Shown: positions 1-48,144, counted from the first letter of the stretch. The stretch: DNA of 64,000 bases from Macrostomum lignano (GCA_002269645.1 NIVC01003305.1:1-64000), one strand, 5' to 3'. Translations and numbers: made by a program. The notes: generated by a model from the letters alone, not told the origin.

Positions 1-42
1 GAGGATCTGCTGTTTCGCGCTCATTGTTGGGGACGAGAAAAG
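1..42 (+). CDS. PPM1H: PPM1H/J/M-like PP2C phosphatase, internal exon (partial, runs off the window edge)
   Basis: Reads EDLLF then (frame change) LIVGDEK, matching PPM1H DLKFPLIYGEGKK. Ends at AG|GCGAGT, a GC donor at 43-48. Needs compensating 1-nt indels to stay in frame. Confidence 0.6.
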
Positions 43-280
43 GCGAGTAAATAGAAAGTTGAAGAATGATTGATTGTGCTCGCTTCAAAAGAATTGTTTG
101 AATAAGCTTTAAATAATGAAATTTTCGCCATTGAAGTTGTCTCGCGCAAACGCGTAATAACTGCCCTATTAAACTTGCCTCTGTGCGAGCACCCGAAGGA
201 GAATTCCCTACAATCGCCCCAACTAATCTGCAAGCGCAAAAGCCTGGCTCTAACAGTTGCCACCCCGCCACACGCTGCAG

Positions 281-543
281 TCCCGCCTGCTGGCCACAAT
301 AGGCGTCGCCCGCGGCTTCGGCGATCACGACCTGCGCGTGTTCGACTCGCCAATTCAGTTGAAACCTTTTCTGAGCTGCGTGCCTCAGGTGACAGTTGTA
401 CAGACTGCTGAGCAAGACGGCTGCGAAGATGTGCTTGTCATGGCAACAGATGGTCTATGGGACGTGATCAGTTGCGAGGCGGTCGCCAAGACGGTGCAGA
501 GAGCTGCCTGAATCAAGCCGAGAAGCCGCACTGCGGCTAATAG
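281..543 (+). CDS. PPM1H: PPM1H-like PP2C phosphatase, catalytic-domain exon
   Basis: After ctgcag acceptor (279-280) it reads SRLLATIGVARGFGDHDLRVFDSPIQLKPFLSCVPQV...VLVMATDGLWDV, matching PPM1H ARVMATIGVTRGLGDHDL...KPFLS...ATDGLWDV. Donor gtgagg at 544. In-frame TGA at 509-511 suggests an indel. Confidence 0.85.
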
Positions 544-699
544 GTGAGGCGGCCGCTGTGCGGTCTGGGGCCCTGGTCAGTCTTTTAAAATAAGGTTTAA
601 AATAACATTTTTTGTGGAAGCAACATAGTGTCAAAACGAATTTCCTGGGATTTGAGATCGTTGCTGCACTGACCGTCTTGGGGTGTATGCGTGTCCTTG

Positions 700-870
700 C
701 AGTCCAGCAGGTGACATCGTAAAGGTGATACTTGAGCTGCCTCTGCGCTAGGTGAGGCTACCAGGCGAAGGAGCCAATAAATAGACCACCTGGAAGGCAT
801 CATGCCTCATAAGCTGGTGTTATCGGACACCTGAAGGCATCATGCCTCAGAACTGGTATCCTGCCAGTAA
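700..870 (-). repeat. Dispersed repeat fragment (family also at about 1990-2050 and 4060-4150 on +)
   Basis: Reverse complement ccaggtggtctatttattggctccttcg...cacctagcgcagaggcagctc aligns with ccaggtggtccatttaccagctcctttcg...cgcctagcgcaatggcagctc at 4089-4148 and gaccaggtggtccctttaccagctcc at 2021-2046. Confidence 0.6.
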
Positions 871-2195
871 GACCCACCTGGAATTCGAGGATCCTAGGCT
901 TATGAGATATGTTCAGAGTGTTGCGCTGCTTCCGAGTTCTTGATGATGTACCTAAATTTGAACTCGATGCTCCGGAAGTAGCTAGATAGTACCGTTGTAC
1001 TACCTATCGATTTGCCTGTGAAAACCTAAAACGTTAGCCTTAGACTTGGTAGGGTTGCTGCACCTTGGTTTGCGGACTCGACGCGTCCGTAACCTGAAAT
1101 AAAATAACGAAGTCGCTTGGAGCAGGCAAATCTGAAAATGTCTCGACAGTTTGATCGTTTCTAAAATAGCTGCTAGAACCTGAAAAACCTGAAATCCTGA
1201 AATGAGAGATGAGTGCTCGGAGGCAGAGAAGCAGCTCCGGACGAGGCCCAAGCGCGGCGGCAAGGATGCAAGGTCTGGGGAAAAACGGCTCCCAGATGCT
1301 CTGTATTTATAGCCGATCGGACCCCCAAAAGTCGTGAGTCTCAAGGGGTTGAGCGCGTGAAACTTCCTTATTTGAGCCTCGAGTCATGCAAGAGATGCGT
1401 GACTCAAGGCCAACTTCCAAATAAGGTAACCCTGTCACGCCGCCGTGGCGTGACTCAAGGTCAGCTGCCACGCACAACTAGCGTGCAGTCACGTGCTTTT
1501 CTGTGCTAAAAATAGATTTGGGCGGATGAGTCATCCTGTTTACTCCCTCTAGACAGCCATTACACTCAGGGCAGGTGATAAGTCATCCTGCTATGCCTCC
1601 TCAGCGCGGGTGGGAAGACATTGTGTGTGGCTGCCCACGCCTGCTCGGGCGATGAGTCATCGGGAAGTAAACACTCAGGCCCAGCACAGGGTAACTCTCT
1701 CTCTAGGTCAGGTGGACTGAGCTGCTGTGCAGCGGAACACAGAGCTCTTAAGGAAAGCTAGTGAATGCTGCTGAAAAGCCAGTTAGCACCAGTCACTACA
1801 AGAGCTCTGGTTGATAGGCTGTCACCAAAAGCCTAGAATTAGACCAATTAATTGTTCGCTACTCCCCTAGAGTAATAACTCATTGGATGCCAAGAGTAAG
1901 TTGTGAGTATAATCTCCTAGACGGCCCCTCTCTCTTCAGCCGATCCGCTCCGGCACAGGGAATCCCGTTTGTTTCCAGTGGGTCACACTGCAGGGTACCA
2001 GCTTCTGGGGCGCGAAGCCAGACCAGGTGGTCCCTTTACCAGCTCCCTGCACGGGTAGGTGAGCAGGCACACGCTCACACAGACTTAATAATTGTGTTTG
2101 GGTGTGCAAGCGACTTATTCTATTTATTCTATTCTTACTACTAGCCCCATTCTTCGAGTAGCCAGTTGAGGTTTTCTGTTTACAATTGTTTACAG

Positions 2196-2419
2196 CCAGA
2201 GCGCATCTATTCCAGCCTGACCATTGTCGCCCAAGAGCTGGTCGGAGCTGCACGAGGCGCCTGCAGAAGCCGGAGCGACCCGGTGGCGGGGGCGGCGGCA
2301 GCTGGCGACTCCCAGACGGCGAGCAGGCGTCAGTTGACGACATTTCCTGCTTTGTGATCCCGCTGGATCTGCACAGCCGGCTGTCTCGAGCTGAGCGGCA
2401 GGAGGACGGACAGTATTGA
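2196..2419 (+). CDS. PPM1H: PPM1H-like PP2C phosphatase, terminal exon (1-nt frameshift near 2258)
   Basis: TIVAQELVGAARG in one frame continues as LQKP...GSWRLPDGEQASVDDISCFVIPL in another, matching PPM1H TLAAQDLVMRARG...WR...SGDDISVYVIPL. Acceptor is 2195 or 2215; stop at 2417-2419. Confidence 0.8.
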
Positions 2420-2807
2420 ATTATCAGCATTCCATATTGTGCTGCGATGAAGTACTTACTCGAGATTCCAGAGTTTATGTTTCTATTCCGGATATCTCTA
2501 CATACATTACTAGATTATTTACTAGCACACACGCTTTTAGTGCTGATTGCATTACTTGCGTTTATTCGCATATAATATTAGCATGCTTTTATCAGCGATT
2601 AGAATTGGAATATTGTTGGATTATATCTTGTCACATGGTTAAACTGTGATCATTTCTCTGTATGAAACTTATACAGATTTGCTGAGACAATAATAACTAG
2701 TTTCTATTTCAACTGCTACGCTGAACTTGTCTTTCATTTATATTTCTTTCTTCCCTTCGATTTCACGTTAATAAATATGCTGTTTAGCTGTGTGCAGGTT
2801 GCTCTAA

Positions 2808-3315
2808 GGGTGAGGTGGGTGCAGGGTGAGTTAGGAGCAGGGTGAGTTGGGAGCAGGGGTGAGTTTGGAGCAGGTTGAGGTGGGTGCAGGGGTGAGTTAG
2901 GAGCAGGGTGAGATGGGTTCATTAGGGAAATGGGAGCAGGGGTGAGGTGGGTTTATTGGTGAAGTGAGAGCAGGGGTGAGTTAGGAGCAGGGTGAGGTGG
3001 ATGCAGGGATGAGGTGGGTGCAGGGTGAGTTAGGAGCAGGGTGAGATGGGTTCATTAGGGAAATGGGAGCAGGGGTGAGGTGGGTTTATTGGTGAAATGA
3101 GAGCAGGGGTGAGTTAGGAGCAGGGTGAGGTGGATGCAGGGATGAGGTGGGTGCAGGGGTGAGGTGAGTTTAGAGCAGGGTGAGGTGGGTGCAGGCAGGG
3201 GTGAGGTGGATGCAGGGGTGAGGTGGGAGCAGGGTGAGGTGGGTGCAGGGTGAGGTGGGTGCAGGGGTGAGTTTGGAGCAGGTTGAGGTGGGTGAGTTAG
3301 GAGCAGGTTGAGGTG
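2808..3315. repeat. G-rich minisatellite (about 17-18 bp units GGTGAGGTGGGTGCAGG / GGTGAGTTAGGAGCAGG)
   Basis: Tandem units directly visible. Confidence 0.9.
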
Positions 3316-3352
3316 ATTGCAGGGTCACGCAAGCCCTCACTGACCCGATGCA

Positions 3353-3753
3353 ATGGACCCATCTGGCACGTACTCGCCCCCGAGCGCGGAGGCAGCGAAG
3401 CGTGCAGGTCATCAGGGTGGCACCCCAGCCGGGCCGCACCAGGGCAGTCCCGTTCCGCTCTGAATGGCGCAGCCCTGCAGCACAACGCCTTCCTGCTAAC
3501 GTACTGCCGCACAGCCCTGGCCGCAGTGTCGGGCTGCACGGCCGGCATTCTGGGCCTGACCGGTCTGCTGGGCTTCGCATTCTACATGCTGGCGAGCGGC
3601 TACCTGTCCTGCCTGCTGCTCGCCAAGGCGGGCCGGGCCAGGTGGCGGTATTTTCCCTCGGCCTGGGCTCTGGCCTCCTCCGGCGTTATGGGCGAGCTCA
3701 TCACCTACATCACGTTCTGGACTTTCCTATACGGAATGGTGCATGTGTACTGA
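3353..3753 (+). CDS. EMC6: ER membrane protein complex subunit 6 (TMEM93)
   Basis: [39 protein letters not shown]...[12 protein letters not shown] matches EMC6, including the terminal [12 protein letters not shown]. The matching frame has no upstream ATG. ATG 3353 ([10 protein letters not shown]...SPVPL) joins it if 1 nt is missing near 3459. Confidence 0.92.
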
Positions 3754-4445
3754 CACTGGCGGCAATTCGTTATTATTCATAGCTTGCTAGTAGTCAATGT
3801 TTCTGCGTTATTGTTTCGTTGTCAGTTTGCATGCCCACTGGCTTTGGTGCACTTATCGGTAGGGGTTTCTAATTGTTGTTAAACGGGGTGCCGTAAGGCG
3901 CGGATCAGCCTAGTCAAGGGCCCTACCAACGAGAATAGGGGTGGGTCTTCAAAGGCGAGAGGTTTGGGGTCCTCACTGCGAAGCTCTTTATTATTTGCCA
4001 AAGGCCTGGCATCACCAAGCCGCTTAGTGCACCTGCTCCGATCTCCTCAGAGATCTAACTACCAGTACTTCTGGGCACAAGGGCTGACCAGGTGGTCCAT
4101 TTACCAGCTCCTTTCGCATGTAGCTTCGCCTAGCGCAATGGCAGCTCAAAGCAGCGATGCAAGATGGTCGGCCAGGCGGCCCCAGGTCGCACCACAGCCC
4201 TCCAGGATTAGTGCACCCATAAAACCTCAGATACAGACCGCCTTCACGATCTCTAATTGCTGAAAACTGGGGACTCTGAAACTTCTTTATGGCCCATTTA
4301 TCAACGGATTCTCATGCCTCAGCACCAAGCATTGTCCATAGGGTTGTTAGTCACGCTGCTCACTTTGAAACTCTGCTCTGTTCGTAATTATAAGATTAGC
4401 GACGCGGTCGGCTATAAATCAGCTACCATTGACAGCTACCATTGG

Positions 4446-4902
4446 TGGTGATTGACATTATCAACCAATAGCTAGCTCAACGCAAGTGCAGTGCAGTTCG
4501 ACTTTTTAATTTTAACTAGCGCCATCCCATAAAAAGTTGTACAATTGTACATGTACTCGTATATAGTCATAGAAGAGCAAATGATCTAAAAAATACATTT
4601 CATTATGGCAAATCGATCCAAGAGATCGAGCCTGCACTGTGTACTGCACACCGCGATGCGCTCGCTGTATTATGTGTCTCTTGATGCTGCTGGTGCGACT
4701 CGAGGGCGAATGAATAATCATTATTTATTGTACACACGGATAATTATTAATAATCAATTAATTTAGGCTTTGTTAGGCAGCCGCGAAAGTGCGGCTTGTC
4801 AAAAATTGAGTAGATCGCTCAATTGGATCCACGCGGTGTCTTACCATGCAAAATTAAGAGTCTTCGCAGTAAGAGACCGTCAAAACGGCAAAGAGAGTGG
4901 AA
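4446..4902. repeat. About 455-bp segmental duplication containing the SL RNA gene (copy 1; copy 2 is 5885-6360)
   Basis: Near-identical from tggtgattgacattatcaacc through caaaacggcaaa, plus a shared agagtggaat. Confidence 0.95.
4778..4889 (-). ncRNA. Spliced leader (SL) RNA gene, copy 1
   Basis: Minus strand: 45-nt exon GCCGTTTTGACGGTCTCTTACTGCGAAGACTCTTAATTTTGCATG (4889-4845) ending in ATG, donor GTAAG, hairpin AATTGAG-cgatcta-CTCAATT, Sm site AATTTTTGA (4807-4799), terminal hairpin GCCGC..GCGGC (4795-4780). 5' and 3' ends approximate. Confidence 0.93.
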
Positions 4903-5397
4903 TGGAAAACGCTCTCCAACAGTGCACAGCTCTGCGCTTGAGCCGCGAGCCCTAGGGCAAATGATTATGTTGAATTTCATCTACTCCAAGTAAGTTATGC
5001 CGACTATAGTGCAGCATTCTTGTGCACTGCAGCTTGAAAAGACGCGCCAGAAAGTGCATGTGCAGCTCTGCCTTTCGTTTCTTTTAGCCGACGACATGTT
5101 TAGACAGTGTGTACAAATTATGCGCCGCCTAACTAATTGATTAATATATTAATATAAATTAAATAAAACTATAGTTGCCGTGTTAGAGAGATACGATCGA
5201 AAAACTACTGAAGTGCATCGCGTCACCGCGTGGAAAGTGCGCATAGAAAATTATAAAGCACCACGGGGAATCGCGAATTTCTCCGTGATCGAGACCGAGT
5301 CGAAGCCGAAGGGAGCATATAGTAGTGTATTAATGCGTGCAGCAGCTGCATGGAATTAGTGTTTTAATGAGCGCGCGGCAGTTAAAGAGGCAAAAAA

Positions 5398-5514
5398 GAC
5401 AACAGCATTTGGTATTCCCAGGCGGTCACCCATCCAAGTACTAACCAAACCCAACGTTGCTTAACTTCGGTGATCAGACGAGAACCGGTGTTTTCAACGT
5501 GTATGGCCGTTGCC
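5398..5514 (-). rRNA. 5S rRNA gene
   Basis: Minus strand GGCAACGGCCATACACGTTGAAAACACCGGTTCTCGTCTGATCACCGAAGTTAAGC...AGTACTTGGATGGGTGACCGCCTGGGAATAC...GCTGTTGTC, followed by a T6 Pol III terminator (5397-5392). Helix I pairs fully; 117 nt. Confidence 0.95.
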
Positions 5515-5575
5515 ACTGGCTAATAGGAGCTTAGCTCATAATTAACCTGAAACCTGCAGCTATACATAATAACAT

Positions 5576-5823
5576 TAGTGGCGGCGCAGCACCAACTCCG
5601 ATTAGAGGGGGTGGTTGTTGGGTGGTCACCCCCCTTCGCCGGCGAATTTTTAGAGCATCGCATAAAATCTCACAAAAACGCATATAACGAGCTCGTACTA
5701 AAGAAATTATTGTGGGTCAGACCACGGAGGGATGGGAGGTACATGTAAGTCACCAACCCCAGGAGGGTAGGTAGGAGGTCGCCCGGGGCAGCAGCACCCT
5801 CTGCCCCCCCGCCGCCACCACTG
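5576..5823. mobile_element. Possible decayed MITE upstream of the 5S gene
   Basis: Imperfect inverted termini tagtggcggcg... / ...cgccgccaccactg; no convincing TSD. Confidence 0.3.
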
Positions 5824-5884
5824 ATACCTAATAGGTAGTACGCTTAATTACGGGGCGTCTCGTCTCATATATACGAGCAACAGT

Positions 5885-6360
5885 TGGTGATTGACATTAT
5901 CAACCAATAGCTAGCTCAACGCAAGTGCAGTGCAGTTCGACTTTTTAATTTTAATTAGCGCCATCCCATAAAAAAGTTGTACAATTGTACATGTACTCGT
6001 ATATATAGTCATAGAAGAGCAATTGATCTAAAAAATACATTTCATTATGGCAAATCGATCCAAGAGATCGAGCCTGCACTGTGTACTGCACACCGCGATG
6101 CGCTCGCTGCTATTTTGTCTCTTGATGCTGCTGGTGCGACTCGAGGGCGAATGAATAATATTATTCGTATTTATTGTACACACGGATAATTATTAATAAT
6201 CAATTAATTTAGGCTTTGTTAGGCAGCCGCGGAAGCGCGGCTTGTCAAAAATTGAGTAGATCGCTCAATTGGATCCACGCGGTGTCTTACCATGCAAAAT
6301 TAAGAGTCTTCGCAGTAAGAGACCGTCAAAACGGCAAATTCGTTAATAATAGAGTGGAAT
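5885..6360. repeat. About 455-bp segmental duplication containing the SL RNA gene (copy 2)
   Basis: Near-identical to 4446-4902, with a short local duplication (aattcgttaataa at 6337-6349 and 6358-6370). Confidence 0.95.
6224..6335 (-). ncRNA. Spliced leader (SL) RNA gene, copy 2
   Basis: Identical 45-nt exon (6335-6291), GTAAG donor and Sm site. The 3' hairpin differs at two positions (GCCGCGCTTCCGCGGC). Confidence 0.93.
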
Positions 6361-6419
6361 TCGTTAATAAGTTTGCCACGGGAGTGTCAAGCAGACAGCT
6401 TCCGGGCCACGCGTCAGCC

Positions 6420-8270
6420 GTTTTAAAATTGGCTCTTGCGCCTGTTTATTTAAAATAGTAATTTGGCGGTGTAAAAGACTGAGGTTAGACTTAGACTGCA
6501 TTGGTACTGCAGGGTAGTAAAACAGGTGCAAGAATACAGTAGTAAAATTAAGGTGCAATAAATGTAGAGCATTTAAAATGGAGAGCATAAGTCAATAGAG
6601 ATTACATTAATTGAAAAAGTAAATTAAATTGAGTAGATGCAATGAAAGTATAAGTTAATAAAGTAAAACAAATATATAAAAGATGAGTAAAACTGGTGCA
6701 TGAAGCTAAAACTAAAAAAGATGTGCAGAAATACCGTATGGGAGGAAGGCTCACAAAGAAGGCATCACAAAGTAAAAAAATAGGGCATCTGCAGGGTGGG
6801 TGATTCGCTCAGGTTGCGGATCTAATTAGACTGGGGAGTAGACAATCCTGTGCCATAATTGGCCAGCCCGGACCCTAGGTCCCAGCAGTGCCCAGGCGGA
6901 ATTATGAGCCTTCCTCCCTTACACAAGAGGACGCGCATTTATAGAATAATAGGGTGTAAATTGTCGCAGTTAGAAGAGCGTTAGCCAGTTGGCAATAGAA
7001 AGGCACTGTAAAAGCAGCATCGACTAGATGAGTAAAAATAAAAAGCAGCAAGGACTAGATAATAGAGAGCTGCATGGACTAGATTTACATGGTTTTGGCG
7101 GCGAGATCTACTATCCTGCAGCCTTCTCCATCAGCTCGGTGAGTTTGACTAATGTGTCTAATGGGGGATCTGGGAGCTTATGGTTTCTCCAGGCTTGCTT
7201 TGGAGGGGGGATTTCGAATCCGTGGATGGCGTTAGCTATAACTTTTTGGTACCATTTGGTGGCTACCTTTTCTACCCTGGGCTTAACCATGGGTATGTTA
7301 GCTATTTTGTGCAGATAGTTGATTCTGGTGAATTTGGGGGCATTGTAGCAGAGTCTGAGGTTGGTGTTTTGGATATGCTGGAGTTTGGTAAAGTTGGTGC
7401 TTCCCATGGACAGGAGAACTTGGGGGGCGTAGGTCATGGCACTCTCAATGTAAGCTCTGTGCAGGAGTCTGAAGGTTCTGCTGGGGACCTTGGTTAGTCG
7501 GGCAATCCTCCTGATCTGGAAGGTTCTGACCTCGCATTTATTGTGTATCTTTTGGACGTGTTGGTTAAGGCTGAGGTTTCTGTCCAAGGTGACCCCAAGC
7601 TGGAATGTAACGGAGTCTGTGTAGGGAATCTCTTCCCCATCGAGTTTAAGGGCTGGGGGGTCGTGTCGAGGTCCGGATTTGCACCGATTGTCGTAGAATT
7701 TGACTGCCTGACTCTTTTTGGCATTAACTTTGATGCCGTACTTCCCCAGCCAGGGTTGAAGGTTTTCTATGTATTTTTGGAGATGCCCTGCGGCATACTT
7801 GGGGCTAATAGACCTGGCCCAAATGGCCATATCATCCGCATATTGACTAGTCTGGACGCAGGGACCCGAGGGTTTGGGCATCGTGCTAACATAGAGGTTA
7901 AAGAGGAGTGGGTTGAGGACCCCGCCCTGGGGGACCCCTGCCTGGGGGACGAAGACCTCACCCAGGCTCTCGCCCACCTTTACTATGATCCTTCTGTCAT
8001 GCATGTAGCTGGATGTAATTCTGACTAGGGTACGTGGCATTTGTATTTCTGTGGTCCTGTGTCTGAGCATGTCATGCCTGACTGAGTCGAAGGCTGCCTC
8101 AACATCTAGGAATAGACCCAAGTGTTTATAGTTTCTGTGTCTCTCTTCTTTGACATCTTGAACTAGTCGGAAAACATTGTCCGGGGCCCCGTGATAGGCG
8201 CGGTATGCACACTGGTTGCTGCCCAGGACCCCCTTCTCTTCCATCCACGGGATGAGTCTTTTTTTCTGGG
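6420..8270 (-). mobile_element. 5'-truncated non-LTR retrotransposon (LINE; Jockey/I-group-like)
   Basis: RT ORF followed by a long T-rich 3' UTR with AATAAA at 6450-6445. The 3' boundary is approximate. Confidence 0.7.
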
Positions 8271-8277
8271 CTGGCAT
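7111..8277 (-). CDS. Reverse transcriptase (LINE ORF2, N-terminally truncated, uninterrupted)
   Basis: Motifs NQCAYR, FLDVEAAFDSV, GVPQGGVLNPLLFNLY, QYADD, LGVTLD. No endonuclease and no RPISL-type motif upstream. Confidence 0.93.
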   Translation of the reverse strand: MPAQKKRLIPWMEEKGVLGSNQCAYRAYHGAPDNVFRLVQDVKEERHRNYKHLGLFLDVEAAFDSVRHDMLRHRTTEIQMPRTLVRITSSYMHDRRIIVKVGESLGEVFVPQAGVPQGGVLNPLLFNLYVSTMPKPSGPCVQTSQYADDMAIWARSISPKYAAGHLQKYIENLQPWLGKYGIKVNAKKSQAVKFYDNRCKSGPRHDPPALKLDGEEIPYTDSVTFQLGVTLDRNLSLNQHVQKIHNKCEVRTFQIRRIARLTKVPSRTFRLLHRAYIESAMTYAPQVLLSMGSTNFTKLQHIQNTNLRLCYNAPKFTRINYLHKIANIPMVKPRVEKVATKWYQKVIANAIHGFEIPPPKQAWRNHKLPDPPLDTLVKLTELMEKAAG

Positions 8278-8908
8278 CCCAGCGCGCTTTTATACCCTGT
8301 TTTTATCTGGCCATAGTTGCCTCCAATTCTTCGGAGTTATGAGCTCTGCCCTCCCTGCCCGGTCCATCCTGCTCTGTCCTTGGTCCATCTGCTGGCTCCT
8401 CTGGTTGTCTCCCTGCCTAAGTGTCTCTGGCTCTCATCCTGACAGGATTGGTGTCCTGGGGAATGAGTTCGTCCCGAATCGGGGATACCGGCTGAGTTCG
8501 GGTCCTCTTGCTCCTTGTGCCCCTTCCTGACCCCTTGGCCTGGCCTCCAATATTGAGCTGGTTAGGTGACACCCTTGTGGCTTGCAGCCCTATAGGTAGT
8601 AGCAATATCCTGCCTGATAGGAGACTCGCCCTCGGAAACAAGCCTTCCAGACTCGCTCCAATAATTAAGCCATTTCCGTAGACTTCGGGGTTTCCCCGCT
8701 CTCGGACCGCTTTCAGTAGTAACCCAAGCTTTTTTCGCTTTTTCAATTTTTTTCTGCGCACTCCCGAAGACTTGTCTGCTGTGTGGTGGCCTGGGTGGAC
8801 TCGGTCCTAGTACCGTCCCTGATTCCACTAATATTGGGTTGGCGGTGTCTTAGTCCATAAGGCTTGGGTTAGTAGCTCCAATACACCTTTTTCTCACCAG
8901 AGTCTTGA

Positions 8909-9873
8909 AATAATGGTATTAAATATACTCACAAAACCTTGGTACTGTGTTCGACAATTTGAGTTAGAAGCCTTTTAGGATGTTAAAAAAGACATTCAGT
9001 AAAATTTGGTAAAGGCTTAGTGGGCTGTTAAAAAACTTAAGTAGCAGCAAGAGTTTAGTGTATGGTTTTGTCTCGCATAGAGACGCCTAACCGCAGTACC
9101 CCTGTGACACTTGTCTCTATGGTTTTGTCTCGCATAGAGACGCCTAACCGCAGTACCCCTGTGACACTTGTCTCTGCCTGGCTGAAAGCTTGTAATGAGT
9201 TAGTAGGCTGGGTTGGAGGGTAATAGTCGATCCGCGAAGGGCTGTGGGTAGCTGTATAGGAAGGCAGGCCTATACCTGTTCCAGTTGATGCTCTGACGGT
9301 CTCCCTCGGAGTGTCCTCTGAGCGAACAGCCAGCGACTCTATTAAAGCTGGAGTGTGCCAGAACCAGGACTGAGTCTGAGCAGGACGGGACCGTTGGCAC
9401 GGCCTAGTAGAAATGGCGGGTTGGCGAAGCAAAGAGTGAAATAGTTCCGGCGATTAGCCTTCCTGCCGCTTCAAAGATAAGAGACTGTCTGGCAAGAGTA
9501 CCCGGGGTTTAGTGGGTGGGGAGGCTCCTTCGGGTTGCCACGGCCGTGGGGGCGGTCATTTTACCGGTTTTTTGGCATTCCTAACCCAGGAGAAGGCACG
9601 GGCTTCCCTGAATGGTTCACTCAACCCCCTCTAGCCCCAGGGAGGTTTTGATTTGAGCTTGGAGTAGGCTTAACGCCTCGAAGGCAGGGGGTAGGGCCCG
9701 CCCTTTGCCGCGACTGGTGTTGCCTGCTCAGCTTGTTGGCCACAGTCACTCTCACTCTAGCTTAGAAACCTTTTGTACCTGGATACACTCCGAATCTGAA
9801 ACCTTAAATATTACTAGTGGCGTAAGAGCCTGATCAATGGCCGAGGCGCCGGAATACTTATTTAGTTAGTTAG
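8909..9873 (+). mobile_element. Non-coding non-LTR-type insertion (SINE-like or truncated LINE) with 18-bp TSD
   Basis: Flanked by ttctcaccagagtcttga at 8891-8908 and 9874-9891. Ends in a (TTAG)n-like tail tatttagttagttag. Internal 57-bp tandem duplication at about 9061-9176. Confidence 0.6.
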
Positions 9874-10486
9874 TTCTCACCAGAGTCTTGAGCTCTGGTC
9901 CCAATAGTGGCCTCTCGGGCTATATGCCCCTGGCAGTATGGCCCAATCAGATCCCTGCGGTAGAGCCCCCTTTCGGGCTGATCCGCGGCAAGCCCCTGGC
10001 TTTCCACCCCGTTTGAGAAGAAGAAAAGGCCGTCGACACAGCTTGCTGGAAGACGTGTGGTTGCATTGTGTGCACAATTTTCTTTCGTACACGCTGTGTC
10101 CAAAAGTTTACTGCGTGGAAAATGCCACGAGGGCTTAGTAAATTCCCACATAACTTTTTCCCTACAAAACTTGTAGGGAATAACAAGGATACGCAGAGGT
10201 GGGCGGTAGGATTTGGGGATGAGGCTGCATACGAGTTGTGCATCATTGCAGACCTCGTCAATGTGCAAACTCTCTGCATTTATGTGCGGGACTCCTGCGC
10301 ACGAGCCATGCGTGTACTTATTGGGAACTTTCATCCCGGGGTGCAACGGCCGCTGCGTACTTTATTTTATTTTCAGCTGGTTGCTTTGTGCAGCCCAGTC
10401 ACAACCAGTCAGGTACCGATTTAAGAATGTGTGTATGAGCGAGGATTTTGCTGAAATCATAAGCTGAGTGAAAGTCTGCGGTAGCA

Positions 10487-10769
10487 ATGTTCTCGAATAC
10501 CGGTAGAGTTTCCAGTCAGCTCGATTCCAGCGGCCCACCGATCGATGCTGGCCAACTGATTGACAGTTCGGCAGATAAAACTGCCGTGGAACTTCCGACA
10601 TTTTTAGCGGCAGAACAGCCTGGTTCACCATCGGATACGCCTGGGATTCTGATGGAAACCCGCTGTTTAGGACTGAGCTACGAGGAGAGACACGAGATCA
10701 ACTTGATGTACCACCAGCTGAGGGACCATGGCGAGCAGCTGCGACTGACAGGATGGAGACCCTTGCTAG
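10487..10769 (+). CDS. Unidentified protein, exon 1 of 2
   Basis: gcaATG start, open frame to a strong donor ag|gtgagt (intron starts 10770), phase 1. Confidence 0.6.
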
Positions 10770-10840
10770 GTGAGTGTTTGAGGCCAGTGGGTTGTGAAGT
10801 ATCTTCGAGAAAATGAGTAAATAAATTTTTCTTCCTTTAG

Positions 10841-11115
10841 ACTGCGAATATGTCAAGGATTGTTGCCATAGCGACAGATGCGACAACTGTAACGAAGCCA
10901 CAGAAGATGAAGAGAACGACAGCTCGTGTTGCAGCAGCAGCGGTAGCAGCAAAAGCTCCTGCAGCTCGGACAGCGGCAGCTCGGTATGCGGCACGAGGTT
11001 CAAGCACCGGCGTCGTACCGAGCGCTGGAACCAGGAGTTCGACGAGGAGGTGCGCGAACTGCAGGGCTTCATCGACCGCTCCTATTATCCGACTAAAGTG
11101 TACAGGGTGAAGTGA
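10841..11115 (+). CDS. Unidentified protein, exon 2 of 2 (Cys cluster, Ser-rich tract, charged C-terminus)
   Basis: Acceptor ttttcttcctttag at 10840; phase matches exon 1. Reads DCEYVKDCCHSDRCDNC...RTERWNQEFDEEVRELQGFIDRSYYPTKVYRVK*. Spliced CDS is 558 nt, 185 aa. Confidence 0.6.
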
Positions 11116-12507
11116 TTCGCGAACGGGAATAGGCAGTGTGTTCTTGTACGAGTAGTAGAGGATGTTTCTCTCCATTAATGAAATTATAGTTTTATTTGTC
11201 TTTCAATAGGAAGCATTAGGAAGATAATGAATTTGGACAACTGCAGTAGCAGGACGCTACAATTGGCTTTCTTAGAAATCAGCTGCAGCCCGGTAAGGCA
11301 CCTATAATTATCGTAATGTTGTCGAGAAGTCGCGGATTTTTTCATCAATCTCACTGACCCTATGGCACTCTGCTTGCGATCGCGGAGTAACGCATCATAT
11401 CGGTTTTTATAATCTTTGCTATCGACTCTGAGAGATCCATATACTAAAAATGGTCTGTCGGTAGGTAGGTAGGTTTTTTTCGCAAATGAATTTCATCCAA
11501 ACAGAAGCAATGTCCGAACAGAGTGTGGAGGTTCGGGTTTGCCGATAAATGCTCGGGACCGGGGTAAATCCCGAATGCCGAAAAATGTCCATTTCCGAAC
11601 ACCTCTAGTCTGCATCAGGGCGGAGCAAAGCTATTTAATGAGTTTAATAAAGTTGCCCCATAAAGATATTGCTAAGAAAACCGATTAAAACGCAAAGTCG
11701 TTTAACTCATGATAATTCATTTGCAAAAAATGCTTACCTTGACCCCGGGGAGTCGTATGAGAGTTCGCACGAAAGTTCTCGAAAGTATAAAGTACATTTA
11801 ACTACTATTAATTGAAGCTGTTCAGCTGTTTCACTCGTACTACCTGATGACTCATTTGTTATTTTCAAGTAGAGACAGTTTTTGCAAGTAGTTTTTACGT
11901 GTACATTTTACACTTTGTATACATTTAATACAAGTACAATAATACACATGCGTTCATTATTAGCTGCGCGTAGACTATACTAAGCTGCATGTAAATTTTC
12001 GTGTTAAATATAAAACAGTGCCGTCTAACTCCGGTTTAACAGTAAACAAATTAAAACACAAACAGCCACTTTGCCTGTCTCTCCCTCCGTGGCTCTAATA
12101 TTAGAATCCCATGTACGCAAATATGAAAAATTCCAATGGGGTTCCCATTAGTCACCGACTTTACTGTATGGTTGCAGCCCAGGTTTAACCAATGCAATCC
12201 TTTATCAAGGAAGCCATGACGAAATAGGAGTTATTTCTTCTGCGGCCCAGCCTCTTCGATGAAGCATCGCCAATCCAGCAAATCTTTTAACAAAAACGGC
12301 TTCAGCGATTTGCCGCCGCATTCCGCATGCAACAGCTGGCCTGCCAGTCAGGGATGCACTGGAGGCGCAAAACTGATCGAAATCACCTAAGTATGTCAAA
12401 TTCCCAACTAAGGCTTCAATGCTTTTATTGTAGCTTAAAAATAGTTACTGTATATAACTATCTCACTGCCCAGGCTCAAAATTCCTTTGTAGTCCACTGT
12501 TTACATG

Positions 12508-13020
12508 TAGATTCAAAATCTCTGTTTAGATCAGAAATGGCACTGTTTAGATCAGAAATCCCAGTGTTTGGATCCGAAATCCCAGTGTTTAGATCCGAAA
12601 TCCCAGTGTTTACATCCAAAATATCACTGTTTAGATTCAAAATCTCACTGTTTAGATTCAAAATCTCACTGTTTAGATCCAAAATCTCACTAATTAGATC
12701 CGAAATCTCACTGATTAGATTCAAAATCTCACTGTTTAGATTTAAAATCTCACTGATTAGATCCAAAATCTCACTGATTAGATAAAAAATCTCACTGTTT
12801 AGATTCAAAATCTCACTGTTTAGATTCTAAATCTGACTATTTGGATCCAAAATCCCCGTGTTTAGATCTGAAATTTCACTGTTTAGATTCAAAATCCCAC
12901 TTTAGATCCAAAATCTCACTGTTTAGATTCAAAATCCCACTTTAGATCCAAAATCTCACTGTTTATATCCGAACTGTCACTGTTAAGATACAAAATCTCA
13001 CTTTGAAGCTTCAAAATCTC
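12508..13020. repeat. 21-bp minisatellite (TGTTTAGATTCAAAATCTCAC)
   Basis: Tandem units directly visible. Confidence 0.9.
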
Positions 13021-13537
13021 GCCAAAGCGACTTGATAGCAGCTACCAGCAGCGCCAAAAAAGCTTGAAATGCGCACAAAATCTGGCTGACAGTACTTTAA
13101 GGAACTATTTTTTCCCGGCAAAACCGACGCATTTTCAACTAGTTTCGGCACAATAACATTTATTTCTAATATTTTTATAGTCTATTATAACTGCGTATTG
13201 GCTAAGCGCCTGCATGGCAGATGACATAACCGAGATTGAAGTTTTGTTACAAGTAGCAGTTTCACAAATCGAATTGAGCCTTTAGACTGGCATGAAAATT
13301 GAGGGTAGCGAGTTTGCAACAGCAGCAAGCGGTGCTATGGGGATGAGAGAAACGATGCGAAAAACGACAAAAAAATGCAACCAAAATTCTCTGCTCAAAG
13401 GCAATTCAGCCGGTGCCAGTAAGGCACGGTACACCGTGCCGGTGACACGGCACTGCTCCTGCCAAGCATTACGGAGGAACAGAGATTGCAGCATTGGGCA
13501 ATTCCTCGGCAGTATCAACTGCTTGGATACTCTATCC

Positions 13538-14746
13538 AACTGATCCCACATCGGAATCCACTGATCCCACTCTCGGATTCCACTGAATCCACACTCGGAT
13601 TCCACTGAATCCATACTCGGATTCCACTGATCCCATACTCGGATTCCACTGATCCCATACTCGGAATCCACTGATCCCACAATCGGACCCCACTGATCCC
13701 ACACTCGGAATCCACTGATCCCACAATCGGACCCCACTGATCCCATACTCTGATTCCACTGATCCCACAATCGGATCCCACTGAATCCACACCCGGATCC
13801 CACTGATCTGATACTCGGATTCCACTGATCCCATACTCGGAATCCATTGATCCCACAATCGGATCCCACTGAATCCACACTCGGATCCCACTGAATCCAC
13901 ACTCGGATCCCACTGATCTGATACTCGGATCCCACTGATCTGATACTCGGATCCCACTGATCTGATACTCGGATCCCACTGATCTGATACTCGGATCCCA
14001 CTGATCTGATACTCGGATCCCACTGATCCCATACTCGGAGTCCACTGATCCCACACTCGGATCCCACTGATCCCATACTCGGATCCCACTGATCCCATAC
14101 TCGGATCCCACACTCGGAGTCCACTGATCCCACACTCGGATCCCACTGATCCCACACTCGGATCACACTGATCCCACACTCGGATCCCACTGATCCCACA
14201 CTCGGATCACACTGATCCCACACTCGGATCCCACTGATCTCACACTCGGATCACACTGATCCCACACTCGGATCACACTGATCCCACACTCAGATCCCAC
14301 TGATCTGATACTCGGATCCCACTGATCTGATACTCGGATCCCACTGATCTGATACTCGGATCCCACTGATCTGATACTCGGATCCCACTGATCTGATACT
14401 CGGATCCCACTGATCCCATACTCGGAGTCCACTGATCCCACACTCGGATCCCACTGATCCCATACTCGGATCCCACTGATCCCATACTCGGATCCCACAC
14501 TCGGAGTCCACTGATCCCACACTCGGATCCCACTGATCCCACACTCGGATCCCACTGATCCCACACTCGGATCACACTGATCCCACACTCGGATCCCACT
14601 GATCTCACACTCGGATCACACTGATCCCACACTCGGATCCCACTGATCCCACACTCGGATCCCACTGATCCCACACTCGGATCACACTGATCCCACACTC
14701 GGATCCCACTGATCCCACACTCGGATCCCACTGATCCCACACTCGG
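13538..14746. repeat. About 22-bp minisatellite (GGATCCCACTGATCCCACACTC)
   Basis: Tandem units visible; source of the WDQWDPSVGSV ORFs. Confidence 0.95.
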
Positions 14747-16685: not shown

Positions 16686-16821
16686 TCCACTTTGAAGATC
16701 CGAGGTGGCGTCTAGAATCGTTAGAAAACCTTTCTCACCTAAGCATCGCGACATCAAAAGCCCCCGGATAACCATGAACCCTCAACTAAGCCAGACTCAG
16801 GACGCACCTTCCGACGCAAGG

Positions 16822-17094
16822 CTACAAGGCGTCGGCTGGGCCGGCAGCCCACTCCCGATAGCGCAGCAGATCCGGCCCGGCTGACACGATGGAGGACAGG
16901 GGCGAACGGAACATGCCAGGCTGACTGGTGCTCGATAGCACAGCCCGGTGCAGCTGCAGGTAGGCAAACTCGAACGCCTGCTTCACCTGCAAGGCGCCAT
17001 AGGATGACCGGCCAATGTCATTGCCAGGCGTCAGGGGATCCTCGATGCACAGCACCGATGGCCTGGCTGAGTGGATTGCACCGTCCAGTTGCAC
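16822..17094 (-). CDS. TENT4: TENT4/PAPD5/Trf4 terminal nucleotidyltransferase, exon 4
   Basis: PSVLCIEDPLTPGNDIGRSSYGALQVKQAFEFAY matches PAPD5 [34 protein letters not shown]. Acceptor ccacag; TAG stop at 16824-16822. Confidence 0.95.
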   Translation of the reverse strand: MQLDGAIHSARPSVLCIEDPLTPGNDIGRSSYGALQVKQAFEFAYLQLHRAVLSSTSQPGMFRSPLSSIVSAGPDLLRYREWAAGPADAL

Positions 17095-17096
17095 CT

Positions 17097-17769
<673 letters not shown>

Positions 17770-17772
17770 CTA

Positions 17773-18363
<591 letters not shown>

Positions 18364-18377
18364 TTAAACAATAAAGA

Positions 18378-18760
18378 GGGATTAGGAAGCTACAGATCGG
18401 TTAGAAGGCAGACTAGGAAGGATTAGGAAGCTGCAGAATGGGATTAGGAAGCTGCAGAATGGAATTAGGAAGCTGCAGAATGGGATTAGGAAGCTGCTGA
18501 ATGGGATTAGGAAGCTGCTGAATGGGATTAGGAAACTACAGAATGGGATTAGGAAACTACAGAATAGGATTAGGAAACTACAGAATGGGATTAGGAAACT
18601 ACAGAATGGGATTAGGAAACTACAGAATGGAATTAGGAAACTACAGAATGGAATTAGGAAACTACAGAATGGAATTAGGAAGCTACAGAATGGGATTAGG
18701 AAGCTGCAGAATGGGATTAGGAAGCTGCAGAATGGGATTAGGAACCTACAGATGGGATTA
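18378..18760. repeat. 21-bp minisatellite in TENT4 intron 1 (GAATGGGATTAGGAAACTACA)
   Basis: Tandem units visible. Confidence 0.9.
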
Positions 18761-18902
18761 AGAGATCTGATAAGAATGGTGGGTTGAGAGATTCAGTAAA
18801 TTGCTGAGATAAAGCTGGACTCGGATGAAAGATTATCTAATTCTGAAACCGATCAGCCAATCGATTTCAGAAAGGATATTGATTGTCCAGTCCCAGACTC
18901 GC

Positions 18903-19340
18903 CTGCACGTCAGTAGCGCAGCCTTCCTCCCTGAGCGCCCTCTCTAGCGCTCTCAGCGGCAGCGCCTCCCAGCGGCCGAACAGCACCAAGTCGATGTCGG
19001 AGGTGGGCAAGTACAGGCCGGTTCGCGAGCTGCCGAACACCTCCAGCCGGGCGTCGGGCCACAGGCGCAGCACGAGGGCCCGCAGGCGGTCAACAACTCG
19101 GCACCGGATCGCCGCCTCGGCCGGGGTCGGCGCCACCCACTGGTTGAACAGTAGCAGCTCCTCGTGCAGGCCGACGACGCCCGGGCTCAAGCGTCGGGGC
19201 CGCCGCCCGTCGGGCCCGAGAAGCCACGGCGGCAGCGGTGGCGGCTGGTGCTGCTGGATGCTGAAGTAACGCCTGTGCTGATTGGAGTAGCGACGCGACC
19301 GGGCGTGAGTCTTGGCCAGCCGCTGCTGCTGCTGGTTCAT
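18903..19340 (-). CDS. TENT4: TENT4/PAPD5, exon 1
   Basis: ATG at 19340; GLHEE...FGSSRTGLYLPTSDIDLV catalytic GS/DxD motif. Ends CAG|GCGAGT (GC donor). The four exons total 1125 nt, 374 aa, in frame. Confidence 0.95.
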
Positions 19341-20534
19341 CTTTGGCAGGTTTATTATCTTCTGTTACGCTAATTTGCTATAAAAGTAGCAGAGGGACTG
19401 CGTGCTGCATCTATCAAAACAGAGTCACAAGCCAGTCAAAAAAGTATATATTTAGCCAATTTAAAACTATGAATAAGCTGAATGATTTGACTTATAGGCT
19501 TATCAACTTAAAATATTTAATATATGTAAAGTGTTTACATGCTAGTTTTTGTAATAGGTTGCCAAAATGAAATAGGAAAAGTTATTTTGATAGGATTTAT
19601 AAAAATGGGATTTCAATAAAGGGTGCAGGACTAGCCAATAAAAGCTTTATTGGAGACTCAGGGAGCCACTAATAGCCTTATCTCTATACAGCTATGTGCC
19701 ATTGTTTAAAATGCCTAGCTAGATCTAAAATCCTAATAATCTCTTATCTAAGACTACCAATGTCTATAAATACAATAAAGCCGCAACAGACTTATAAAAA
19801 GAACATAAAGTTCATTATACAATATAATGGACACTCATTTTTGCTTAGTAAAATTAGCTAAAACTAGCACATTAATTCCCCTATAATGGGCATTCAATTT
19901 CAAAATTGAAACATAAATAAACAATATACTAAAAATGAAAATCTTGCTTGCTTGTAATCGATTAGAGAAAAAATGGCTTAACCGATTTTCATGAGACTTG
20001 CACTGTTCGATCAGAAATTTTCCCGTGACTGTACATGCATCGTGGCTAAGAAATTGCTCGATGCTAAAGGCATTAAATATTCGAAAAACATGCTTTTTTT
20101 GCAAAGGTCAAGCAAACTTTTCGACTTGAAATGCATTGTAAGAATGCTAGAGAAAAAACTGACTGGTTGAATTCTGATTCTGAAATAGATTGCATCATAA
20201 CTGAATTGTAACTCCGACTTGAATTGAAAATGCAGTGTGGAAGCGTAGCACCAGACTTGATTTAAATTGCGTAACCATATTGTTAACTGATACTGACTGA
20301 CTGAGAAACTGATTATGTCATAACTGCTTCGTGTGATTTACTCTATGCTTGGATTTTAAAGTGTTGAATTATATAAGTGAAAAATTTCATGTTATCAAAA
20401 CGATGAGAGCTAGCCTAGAGGTGAACAAACTGAAATGCTAAATGCAGTTTGGTTCGAATTGGTTCGAATTTTCATAGAGTATAATTTTTTTAATTAAAGC
20501 TTTTCAACGTCAGGAAAACTAAAAGACTTTTTAA

Positions 20535-33812: not shown

Positions 33813-34238
33813 TTACTTAAGTCCAAACGGCATCCTCCGTCTGATTTTCCTCTTTTTCCGTTGCTGCTTTTTATTGCCCCGCTTCTTCGACCCGCCGCCA
33901 GCTTGGTTGGCTGACGCGGTGGCGGTGGCAGCTGCTGCGTGAGCGGCTGCGGCCAACCGCCTGTGAATCTGTGAGTCCACCAGAGCGCCTGTGAAGGCCC
34001 GGCCTCGCCAGGTCACGGTGACAACCAGGGGGCAACCGCTGTCGCCACGCTGAGCATCCAGCCAGATTACGCCTTGCAGATGCACTCGGGTGCCAGGAGG
34101 CCGCGGAGTCGCTTCGTCGTGGATTTCTGCCGGCTCGTCTGGGAGGCTGGAGCTGGTTGGTGTGGCGTCCTGTTGCGGATTGACGCTGTCGACACAAATA
34201 CTTCTTGACTGCTGCTGCCACTGTTCGTTTTGCACCGT
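33813..34238 (-). CDS. Short ZNF608/609 (brakeless)-like paralog, exon 2 (terminal)
   Basis: Acceptor atttccag. PPGTRVHLQGVIWLD...PLVVTVTWRGRAFTGALVDS matches the family domain EPGTSVNLEGIVW...LVVNVTWRNKTYVGTLLD. Basic tail, then stop; no zinc finger. Confidence 0.8.
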   Translation of the reverse strand, partial: TVQNEQWQQQSRSICVDSVNPQQDATPTSSSLPDEPAEIHDEATPRPPGTRVHLQGVIWLDAQRGDSGCPLVVTVTWRGRAFTGALVDSQIHRRLAAAAHAAAATATASANQAGGGSKKRGNKKQQRKKRKIRRRMPFGLK

Positions 34239-34635
34239 CTGGAAATATTTTGGGGTTTGAAAAGCCTACAGGTTATTGCAGTGCACTGAATTTGGGTCAG
34301 AACGAGCGCATCACTCTACTTATAGGACTGGGAAGATTAGATTGCTCGAAAGGACCACTAGAAGTAACGCTAACTTCTACCTTAGTGCGTCCAAAAAGTT
34401 CTTAGACACCCCTCCTATCTCTGCATCCGTTCAATCGATTTTTATAAAAATTTACACAAACCCGGGCTTATATCTAATGAGTTCAGTGCTAAAGTTTCAG
34501 CTTAATCGGGTTGACAGAGCAAAAGCAATCGATCATTTACTAAGGGTGTCTAAGAACTTTTTGGACGCACTAAGGTAGTGGTATTTGAAATTTCTACTGT
34601 TGAAGTTCTATAAACACTAGAGATTCAAAGTGGAG

Positions 34636-44149: not shown

Positions 44150-44551
44150 CGTGGTGAAACCCGCCAACAAAGCCAGCAAACGGGTCGGCTGGGTACGGGG
44201 CTGGCGGAGGACCAGGCGGCAGAAACTGCGGCGGCGGCGGCTGCGGAGCCCCACTGCCCGTGCTGGCCGAGGAGCCGCCACCAATGGGAAATCCGGTCCC
44301 CGCGGAGGAAGAGACGGCGGCAGCGGCAGCCGCGGCCGCGGCGAAGGCGGCCTCCATAAAGCGGAGCTGCTCGAGCTCGTACAGCTTTCTGGGGTCGGCG
44401 GGAGGCCAGTAGAGCTGATGGGGCGGGAGCGGCGGCTGCGGCTGCGGCGGCTGAGGAAGGAGGCTGGCCACAGATGTTGGTGGGGGATCAGCCTTTGGCG
44501 ACTGTGGAGGCGGCGGGGGCGGCGGGGGTGCCACGGTAGTTCCGATGCACG

Positions 44552-44622
<71 letters not shown>

Positions 44623-45203
44623 GGATTCTTGGACCCGCCGGCCTCCCGCTGCTGCTGCTGACGCTTCGCTGCAGCCGAAACCGCTGGCTTCCGCTGCTCG
44701 GGACTTTGAACACGGGGTGCGGATCGGCGCCCCCTGAGGACTCGACGATGCCGTCGACGGCGTCTGCGGATCTGCAAGCGGTTGCGGAGGTGGCGGTGGC
44801 GGGCGCCTGCGTTCCGAGTGACAGTCGTTGTGGTGCCACTTCATGGCCAGCTCGTTGATGAATCGCTTGGAGCAGTCGGGATGAGGACAAGAGACTGGGA
44901 GAAGCTGCTGCTTGGTGGCAGCGCGGCTGTGCTGTGGCTGCTGCTGCGGCTGCGAGCGCCTCCGGTTGATGATGGCCCCGTTGGAGGCGGCGGCGGCCGC
45001 TGCTGCGGCTCGACGCTTTCGTCCAGTTGACGGAGGTGAAGATCGGTGAGTCTTCTGCTGCTGCTCTGCCTGCTGCTCCTGGCACTCCTGCTGCTGTTGC
45101 TGCTGTGCGCTTGGCTCAGAAGAGACCAGGTCGCGCTGAGACGAGTCTAGCAGGGTGCCAACGTAGGTTCGACCGCGCCAGGTGACGTTAACGACTAGCA
45201 TGC
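44150..45203 (-). CDS. ZNF608: ZNF608/609 (scribbler/brakeless)-like protein, exon 3 with atypical C2H2 finger and polyQ (frame disruption near 44.7 kb)
   Basis: GMLVVNVTWRGRTYVGTLLDS and CPHPDCSKRFINELAMKWHHNDCH (cf. ZNF608 [24 protein letters not shown]). The later polyQ/Pro-rich part lies in another frame and ends at g|gtgaga (44149). Confidence 0.8.
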
Positions 45204-45221
45204 CTGCAGTGCCAGATGCGA

Positions 45222-45548
45222 GATGAGTATGGGTGAGATGAGTATGGGTGAGATGAGTATGGGTGAGGTGAGTATGGGTGAGATGAGTATGGTGAGGTGA
45301 GCATGGGTGAGATGAGTATGGGTGAGGTGAGTATGGGTGAGATGAGTATGGTGAGGTGAGCATGGGTGAGATGAGTATGGGTGAGGTGAGTATGGGTGAG
45401 ATGAGTATGGTGAGGTGAGCATGGGTGAGATGAGTATGGGTGAGATGAATGGGGTGAGATGAGTGTGGTGAGATGAGTGGGGTGAGATGAATGGGGTGAG
45501 ATGAGTGGGGTGAGATGAGTGGGGTGAGATGAGTGAGATGAGATGAGT
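45222..45548. repeat. About 15-bp minisatellite (GAGATGAGTATGGGT)
   Basis: Tandem units next to the exon 3 acceptor. Confidence 0.9.
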
Positions 45549-47436: not shown

Positions 47437-47893
47437 GAAAAGTAGCGCAGCAGCAGCAGCCATACCGGGCGCTAACGGGGGGACTGCATGGGCATTTGAT
47501 GTGGGCATTGAAGAAGACAGTTGCCGCGGTCCTTGAAAGGGAAGAGAGAAGGCCCGAGGCTCGCTGCCCACTTTCCAGTCGCCGTCACCCAGTCGGAATC
47601 CGAGGCCAAACCTGCCCGTCCCCGCCCCGGGTGTCCGATATTCTCGGCCATCGGCCGGTCAGCTGTTTGGATCTGATTCCTTCCCTTGCTGCGCCGGTGC
47701 CTCACTCTCGCTCCCAGTCTCCTCTCTTCCCCTCCCTTCACTCATTTCTCTCTATCCCTCGCCTGGTCTAAGTTGGGAATAATATACACACACTGCTGAC
47801 TGGAGTGGGCCCAGTTTAGATGAGCTCCACTAATCCTTTCCAGCAAATAATTTGAAACAGTCTTAACAGTTATTGTTAGTCACCACAGCTTAC

Positions 47894-48056: not shown

Positions 48057-48144
48057 CTGAAAAGGAATTTTAGCAGTAGTGAGTGCTGCATGCATGACTG
48101 CAGGTGTGTTCGCTGCTGAGCTTGTTCTTAACTGGTAATGCAGC

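Follow-up and report, generated by a model that had tools for sequence, protein, structure and literature searches.

Are spliced leader (SL) RNA genes linked to 5S ribosomal RNA (rRNA) genes in flatworms? SL genes adjoin 5S genes in nematodes, tunicates and several protist groups, and arguments on how trans-splicing arises have drawn on this; reviews note that in many eukaryotes SL genes often lie close to 5S genes. The question is raised here by a 64,000-nt stretch of the Macrostomum lignano genome (GCA_002269645.1, NIVC01003305.1:1-64000; hereafter the window), in which a 5S rRNA gene lies between two genes of SL RNA type. An earlier examination of this DNA (the sequence-only reading) proposed an SL-5S linkage unit, or its orphon, in a Macrostomum-like flatworm, where such linkage is not known to have been described. 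Our search agrees with this: in the literature searched, with subscription journals outside the search, we found no report of SL-5S linkage in Platyhelminthes. The locus is a real but small, single-locus case of SL-5S linkage, in which two noncanonical SL paralogues surround one 5S gene. We give an even chance to the reading that these variants are genuine SL RNA genes of minor importance, in a mini-cluster that stands by itself.

Two SL RNA genes and one 5S rRNA gene

The 45-mer GCCGTTTTGACGGTCTCTTACTGCGAAGACTCTTAATTTTGCATG has exactly two matches in the window, both on the minus strand, and none in 100 shuffles. These matches are the exons of two genes, SL-A and SL-B (Table 1), spaced 1446 bp apart. 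The exons are identical, end in ATG and are followed directly by GTAAGAC; the two genes differ at just two positions, both within the loop of stem-loop III. In minimum free energy (MFE) and centroid folds of the two ~112-nt RNAs, stem-loop I pairs UCUUACU of the exon with GGUAAGA of the donor and is followed by stem-loop II, an unpaired AAUUUUUGA and a GC-rich terminal stem-loop III. The fold z-scores are about -3.4 and -3.8. These are the marks by which an SL RNA is recognized: a GU 5' splice site immediately after the exon and paired to it in stem-loop I, a single-stranded Sm site between stem-loops II and III, and a length of ~100-110 nt. The 3' ends given for both genes are putative. An Rfam scan of the window (gathering thresholds and E-values) gave no match for the SL candidates, a result that is uninformative because a model for flatworm SL RNAs appears to be absent from Rfam.

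The 5S gene, in the same orientation as both SL genes, was identified by a full-length covariance-model match above the curated threshold and by the T run at its 3' end. Each of these elements had been described in the sequence-only reading, down to the pairing donor, the internal hairpin, the Sm site and the 3' GC hairpin. Exact searching, folding and the Rfam match upheld all of them, its coordinates and SL-to-SL spacing proved accurate, and its Macrostomum-like flatworm is M. lignano: bases 1-13753 of the window are the same, base for base, as NIVC01003305.1:1-13753 of M. lignano assembly Mlig_3_7.

SL-A and SL-B belong to two duplicated blocks (R and R', 454 and 447 bp) that are 96.5% identical. 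Between the blocks is a unique spacer that holds the 5S gene, and the 3' part of this spacer is the upstream region of SL-B. Sequence outside both blocks is likewise unique within the window, so the layout of block, spacer with 5S and block amounts to 1.31 units of a 1446-bp period and not to an array. Further diverged SL or 5S copies, or extra array units, were sought in the window and none were found. The locus is a local duplication, with no tandem array.

Table 1. Features of the SL-5S-SL cluster and its surroundings (positions in the window)
Feature	Position	Strand	Basis or remark
Duplicated block R (copy A): SL-A and ~340 bp of 3' flank	5885..6338	-	454 bp
SL-A, variant SL RNA gene, ~112 nt	6224..6335	-	Exon match, fold, homology to canonical Macrostomum SL RNA genes
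SL-A exon	6291..6335	-	
SL-A GT donor	6289..6290	-	
SL-A Sm site, AATTTTTGA	6245..6253	-	
SL-A stem-loop III	6225..6242	-	
Unique spacer with 5S gene, 992 bp	4893..5884	-	No second copy in window
5S rRNA gene, full length	5397..5514	-	Rfam RF00001, model positions 1-120, 106.5 bits (gathering threshold 38), E = 2e-22
T run (TTTTTT), Pol III terminator type, directly 3' of 5S	5391..5396	-	Read from sequence
Duplicated block R' (copy B): SL-B and ~340 bp of 3' flank	4446..4892	-	447 bp
SL-B, second variant SL RNA gene	4778..4889	-	
SL-B exon	4845..4889	-	Identical to SL-A exon
SL-B Sm site	4799..4807	-	
5'-truncated non-LTR (LINE-type) reverse-transcriptase ORF, upstream of SL-A	7111..8277	-	Pfam RVT_1, 5.7e-27
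EMC6 gene, convergent with the cluster	3352..3753	+	Pfam EMC6; 690 bp from block R'
TENT4/PAPD5-like noncanonical poly(A) polymerase gene	16784-19601	-	NTP_transf_2 and PAP_assoc exons

A noncanonical leader exon

M. lignano mRNAs carry the SL CCGTAAAGACGGTCTCTTACTGCGAAGACTCAATTTATTGCATG (PMC5173321; PMC8629364). The window exon has the same length (45 nt) and is identical to it at 37 positions, differing at the other 8; judged by its sequence, it is distinct from the leader whose trans-splicing in M. lignano is established. With 8 of 45 positions changed, its occurrence on mRNA 5' ends is less likely than the sequence-only reading assumed. Both exons start with GCCG, end with AUG and contain the identical core GACGGTCTCTTACTGCGAAGACTC (about 22-24 nt). 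The changes are TTT for AAA at positions 6-8 (window 6328-6330 in SL-A, 4882-4884 in SL-B) and TTAATT for AATTTA at positions 33-38, where 33-36 and 38 differ (window 6298-6303 and 4852-4857).

The variant exon strings had no match in the literature searched. Published searches would have passed over these genes: the one for SL RNA genes demanded a 100% match to the canonical 35-mer (PMC8629364), and SL discovery kept only the most frequent 19-mers (PMC5173321). In read data, the variant SL RNA itself would be recognizable as the variant exon running on into GTAAGACACCGCG.

Seven of the eight differences lie at positions that are unpaired in the predicted fold, and the eighth, A38U, gains a pair. 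This is the pattern that a functional paralogue would show under the fold model, with the caution that the eight differences represent two or three clustered events and not eight independent ones. A fold of the canonical exon alone pairs the two changed blocks with one another (U5-A38, A6-U37, A7-U36 and A8-U35); in the window variant, two of these four pairs are swapped to U-A and two are lost. Either partial covariation of a long-range helix in the exon or chance may account for this.

For comparison we scanned metagenomes with the 22-nt core common to the variant and canonical exons, which returned three environmental sequences; the same core had no match in a scan of viral contigs. The first sequence (L001) is a metatranscriptome contig in which the canonical SL, from position 8 of the 45-mer (L001:1-40), is joined to a CNBP-like zinc-knuckle mRNA. 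On this contig a leader containing a stop follows the SL AUG, with the ORF beginning ~100 nt downstream; environmental Macrostomum transcripts are thus present in JGI data. The second (L002), a Macrostomum-like contig, is genomic, and its canonical SL RNA gene precedes a long ORF by ~1.1 kb. The third (L003, JAGQZA010000190.1) is filed under a Flavobacteriaceae metagenome-assembled genome but is a eukaryotic, Macrostomum-like contaminant with TTAGGG-like repeats. Its U1 snRNA gene (1121-1283; 151.7 bits in Rfam) is followed after 300 bp, on the same strand, by a canonical Macrostomum-type SL RNA gene (1589-1696). The exons of the L002 and L003 genes are identical and their intron halves differ. 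No 5S gene was found within 0.6 kb upstream or 2.4 kb downstream of the L002 SL gene, or near that of L003.

The variants share with the canonical SL RNA of M. lignano, M. cliftonense and M. hystrix (a 109-nt gene; Ustyantsev and Berezikov 2021, PMC8629364) the 45-nt GCCG...AUG exon with its GACGGTCTCTTACTGCGAAGACTC core, a GTAAGAC donor that pairs with the exon, an Sm site flanked by the second and third of three stem-loops, and a length of ~110 nt. Three hairpins and an Sm site were also predicted for the SL RNAs of both L002 and L003. Relative to these two genes, the variant stem II has a larger loop, a shifted register and a different 3' arm around the common GAUCCAAU, stem-loop III is longer and GC-richer, and the Sm site is AAUUUUUGA instead of UAUUUUUAG, the variant being nearer the consensus. 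As this comparison of 3' halves was made with L002 and L003 and not with the canonical M. lignano intron, it combines divergence between species with divergence between paralogues.

Copies of the locus in the assembly

Using the EMC6 and TENT4 proteins as anchors, we fetched sister loci from three further contigs of GCA_002269645.1. Two forms of the exon occur among them. Variant v1, which ends in GACTCAATATTTTGCATG, differs from the canonical SL at 5 of 45 positions, and v2, the form in the window, differs at 8; the 18-mers GACTCAATATTTTGCATG and GACTCTTAATTTTGCATG are diagnostic of v1 and v2, respectively. The window has v2 in both SL genes. L005 (NIVC01001162.1) has SL-A, 5S and SL-B with v1 in both SL genes and a spacing of 1450 bp, L009 (NIVC01000629.1) has v1 in SL-A, the 5S gene and v2 plus G28T in SL-B, and L008 (NIVC01001163.1) has a single SL gene (v1) and no 5S. 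The SL-5S-SL order is thus kept in three of the four copies.

The sister loci are ~99.3-99.4% identical to the window over the LINE region (Table 1), and the LINE is kept in all four. M. lignano is a hidden polyploid, and recent duplicates or haplotypes are expected. On this degree of identity, the four copies are recent duplicates or haplotypes of one locus, so they do not constitute independent evidence of linkage.

The few differences among the copies are informative. Between the window and L005 there are no mismatches over the aligned LINE, spacer, 5S and distal-flank segments (~3.2 kb), and yet both SL exons carry an identical difference of three adjacent bases, with a further small patch of differences in block A. 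Taken with the mix of v1 and v2 in L009, this pattern is the signature of short-tract gene conversion between the SL blocks, with v1 and v2 in all combinations; mispolishing of near-identical repeats is a possible alternative. The single SL gene of L008 has an A-type 5' flank and a B-type 3' flank, exactly as expected if recombination between the two blocks had removed the 5S gene.

The 5S genes of two sister loci are perfect and agree with published M. lignano primers (PMC5704211). Compared with the sister loci and the published primer (PMC5704211), the window copy lacks one nucleotide near 5500 (CC to C; GCCATACCACG to GCCATACACG), which costs it 10 bits (106.5 versus 116.5 bits in Rfam). 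This deletion may be an assembly error rather than a real mutation, and an indel of the long-read type may account for it.

Such errors raise a broader concern, that the arrangement or the exon variants were themselves produced by misassembly or polishing of repeats. The indel errors of the window contig and the mosaic of v1 and v2 among copies ~99% identical would be in keeping with that. We nevertheless consider an artefact very improbable: the SL-5S-SL order and its flanks were assembled independently on three contigs, with a clean recombinant on a fourth, v2 occurs on two contigs, and three adjacent substitutions are atypical of long-read error.

Linkage without an array

An established case of SL-5S linkage is the SL1-5S rDNA repeat of Caenorhabditis elegans, with about 110 tandem units of roughly 1 kb each; similar units are found in Oikopleura, euglenozoans and dinoflagellates. 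As in C. elegans, SL and 5S genes of the M. lignano locus lie within about 0.5-0.7 kb of one another and alternate along the DNA. The relative orientation differs, the SL1 and 5S genes being divergent in C. elegans and those of M. lignano on the same strand. Unlike the nematode repeat, the locus comprises 1.3 units with one 5S gene, unique flanks, protein-coding neighbours and an SL that is not the major one. Multicopy head-to-tail alternation, the mark of a tandem SL-5S array, was seen neither in the window (1.31 units, one 5S) nor in L005 and L009, and L008 lacks a 5S gene altogether. Nor is the principal leader of the species involved: the exon is noncanonical, and no canonical SL was found in the window or in any of the M. 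lignano loci fetched.

In M. lignano, fluorescence in situ hybridization shows the main 5S rDNA as a terminal cluster on chromosome 2; outward-facing primers give a product of 1645 bp, for a unit of ~1.65 kb with a spacer of ~1.5 kb (PMC5704211). Such a spacer is long enough for an SL gene, and together with the common orientation and the 1446- to 1450-bp period this would suit a locus at the edge of, or sampled from, a genome-wide SL-5S tandem repeat in which the spacers of the main 5S array carry SL genes. That interpretation is unlikely given the unique flanks on both sides, the presence of one 5S gene per locus in three assembly copies, the position between ordinary protein-coding genes, an exon that is not the major SL of the species, and the L002 and L003 canonical SL genes, which have no 5S gene within 0.6-2.4 kb. 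Of the earlier proposal of a linkage unit or its orphon, the adjacency to 5S therefore stands at this locus and the recurring 1.44-kb array does not; "orphon-like mini-cluster" fits better than "linkage unit."

Other flatworm SL genes provide further parallels. Parasitic flatworms have tandem SL clusters, including a 595-bp repeat in Schistosoma mansoni and clusters in Echinococcus and Taenia (PMC12582326, PMC2770079). The M. lignano locus resembles these in having same-strand SL genes <5 kb apart, several SL variants per genome and within-cluster homogenization consistent with concerted evolution. It differs in having two SL copies, as opposed to tens, and in the 5S gene in its spacer, a feature unreported for the parasites. 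The SL-U1 pair of L003 is also comparable, as its SL gene lies within a few hundred base pairs of another small-RNA gene on the same strand. There, however, a Pol II gene (U1) takes the place of the Pol III gene (5S), the SL is canonical and the species is different. The 9-mer CCTAACAAA occurs 3' of both window SL genes and 3' of the L003 U1 gene, a weak hint that SL and U1 genes might have a 3'-end signal in common.

Minor SL genes or dead orphons

If the cluster is not part of an array, the remaining question is whether its SL genes are active. A local duplication gave rise to the succession of SL block, spacer with 5S and SL block, and recent genome or haplotype duplications in M. lignano spread the cluster to at least four assembly contigs. 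Afterwards, short tracts appear to have been exchanged between SL blocks and one copy lost its 5S gene via interblock recombination, the rest remaining ~99% identical. Each SL gene would produce a ~110-nt Sm-class RNA. By analogy with the canonical Macrostomum SL, stem-loop I would hold the AUG-ending exon against the 5' splice site of the RNA itself, and pre-mRNAs could receive this exon at their 3' splice acceptors. For the 5S gene we expect a separate Pol III transcript that would start from the internal promoter and stop at the T run. The variant SL RNAs would be at most minor contributors to trans-splicing, and the adjacency to 5S may be a remnant, or a by-product of the clustering of small-RNA genes, as distinct from the main SL or 5S array of the species.

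Several observations weigh against this reading. Three transcriptome studies reported a single SL, and our single metagenome scan with the core returned only canonical-SL sequences and no variant exon. Upstream of the exons, SL-A and SL-B have only TTCCACTCT(C/A)...TTT in common, into which SL-A has an 11-bp insertion; beyond about -14 they are unrelated, and at most one of them keeps the ancestral distal promoter. Enumeration of k-mers in five upstream regions (SL-A, SL-B and the SL genes of L002 and L003, plus L003 U1) found no convincing common or snRNA-type promoter motif. The window contig is noisy, with 71 gap columns versus ~12 mismatches over 8.5 kb, and the v1/v2 mosaics among near-identical copies could result in part from assembly polishing. 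With so few differences among the four loci, selection on the SL RNA is not measurable, and expression and use of the variant exon are predictions from sequence and fold.

Alternatively, the cluster could be a decaying fragment of an older SL-5S arrangement, with the SL genes as untranscribed pseudogenes and the 5S as a stray copy. The noncanonical exon and the recovery of only the canonical SL from transcriptomes point in this direction, as do the replacement of the SL-A upstream region by LINE-adjacent sequence, the loss of the 5S gene and one SL gene from L008, the extra G28T in stem I of the L009 SL-B gene, and the 1-nt deletion in the window 5S. Decay is harder to reconcile with the distribution of changes, none of which falls on the donor, on the Sm site or on paired positions. 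Despite sequence change, stems II and III still form, and the Sm site is nearer the consensus than in L002 and L003. The 5S gene is perfect in two sister loci and in agreement with published primers, and its deletion in the window may be a long-read indel error. We regard dead orphons as a serious possibility but a doubtful one, and retain minor SL RNA genes in a stand-alone mini-cluster as our preferred reading.

A bolder version, by analogy with nematode SL2, is that M. lignano expresses a second SL class (v1 and v2) from 5S-linked genes and places it on a subset of mRNAs; the main 5S spacer may carry such genes too. We think this improbable. A second class, with distinct exon loops and a distinct small nuclear ribonucleoprotein-forming 3' half, would extend the SL-5S association to Platyhelminthes. 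In M. lignano, which serves as a model of regeneration and transgenesis among flatworms, gene models and operon calls rest on reads that carry one SL sequence. Use of the variant SL RNAs would mean that some trans-splice sites and operon boundaries now go unrecognized. Their use would also make the claim that flatworms lack specialized leaders testable in a tractable species. If instead the genes are silent, the finding reduces to a curated pseudogene annotation.

Apart from function, a flatworm case of SL-5S adjacency, though small, adds a data point to the comparison among eukaryotes. With <1% divergence among them, the four copies would also capture short-tract gene conversion and repeat-mediated deletion at SL genes, the processes invoked for concerted evolution of the SL clusters of parasitic flatworms.

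Genomic neighborhood and other features of the window

The cluster is in a single-copy gene setting, in the order PP2C, EMC6, SL-5S cluster, LINE and TENT4. The TENT4 gene, which corresponds to M. lignano BOX15_Mlig013717g1, shares the strand of the SL cluster and lies ~10.5 kb upstream of it. The window EMC6 is frameshifted over its first ~35 codons (3340-3460) relative to the three sister copies, although the DNA does contain the same start, ATG GAC CCA TCT. The frameshift probably reflects an uncorrected long-read indel in the window contig.

SL-A is ~770 bp downstream of the stop codon of the LINE ORF, and the LINE region reaches to about 9500. The nearest database proteins to this ORF are only 24-28% identical to it, with no exact gene among them, as ORFs of transposable elements are unannotated in the M. 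lignano record. Other copies were sought to fix the 3' end of the LINE, and only the syntenic copies were found; the SL-A upstream region may be LINE 3' UTR, and the LINE may have displaced the SL-A promoter. An element of the NeSL type, which targets SL genes, was considered and rejected: the ORF has only RVT_1 and a typical LINE C-terminal tail, without a restriction-like endonuclease region, and the SL exon is uninterrupted.

Three ZNF608/609-type exon-like ORFs occur on the minus strand (33816-34265, 44488-45363 and 47883-48167) in Q/A-rich low-complexity surroundings. None has a significant Pfam match; the motif VTWRGR.(Y/F).G.L(L/V)D is common to two of them, and a C2H2-like CPHPDCSKRF...H...H occurs in one.

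The window is dense in minisatellites (12477-13041, 13462-13989, 2796-3310, 9061-9174 and many stretches at 34-62 kb), whose periods are 21, 22, about 33 and 57 bp. Along with long microsatellite-like tracts, they create long spurious ORFs that encode repeated peptides. Some of the minisatellites are in TENT4 introns, where they lower the apparent identity between the paralogous loci.

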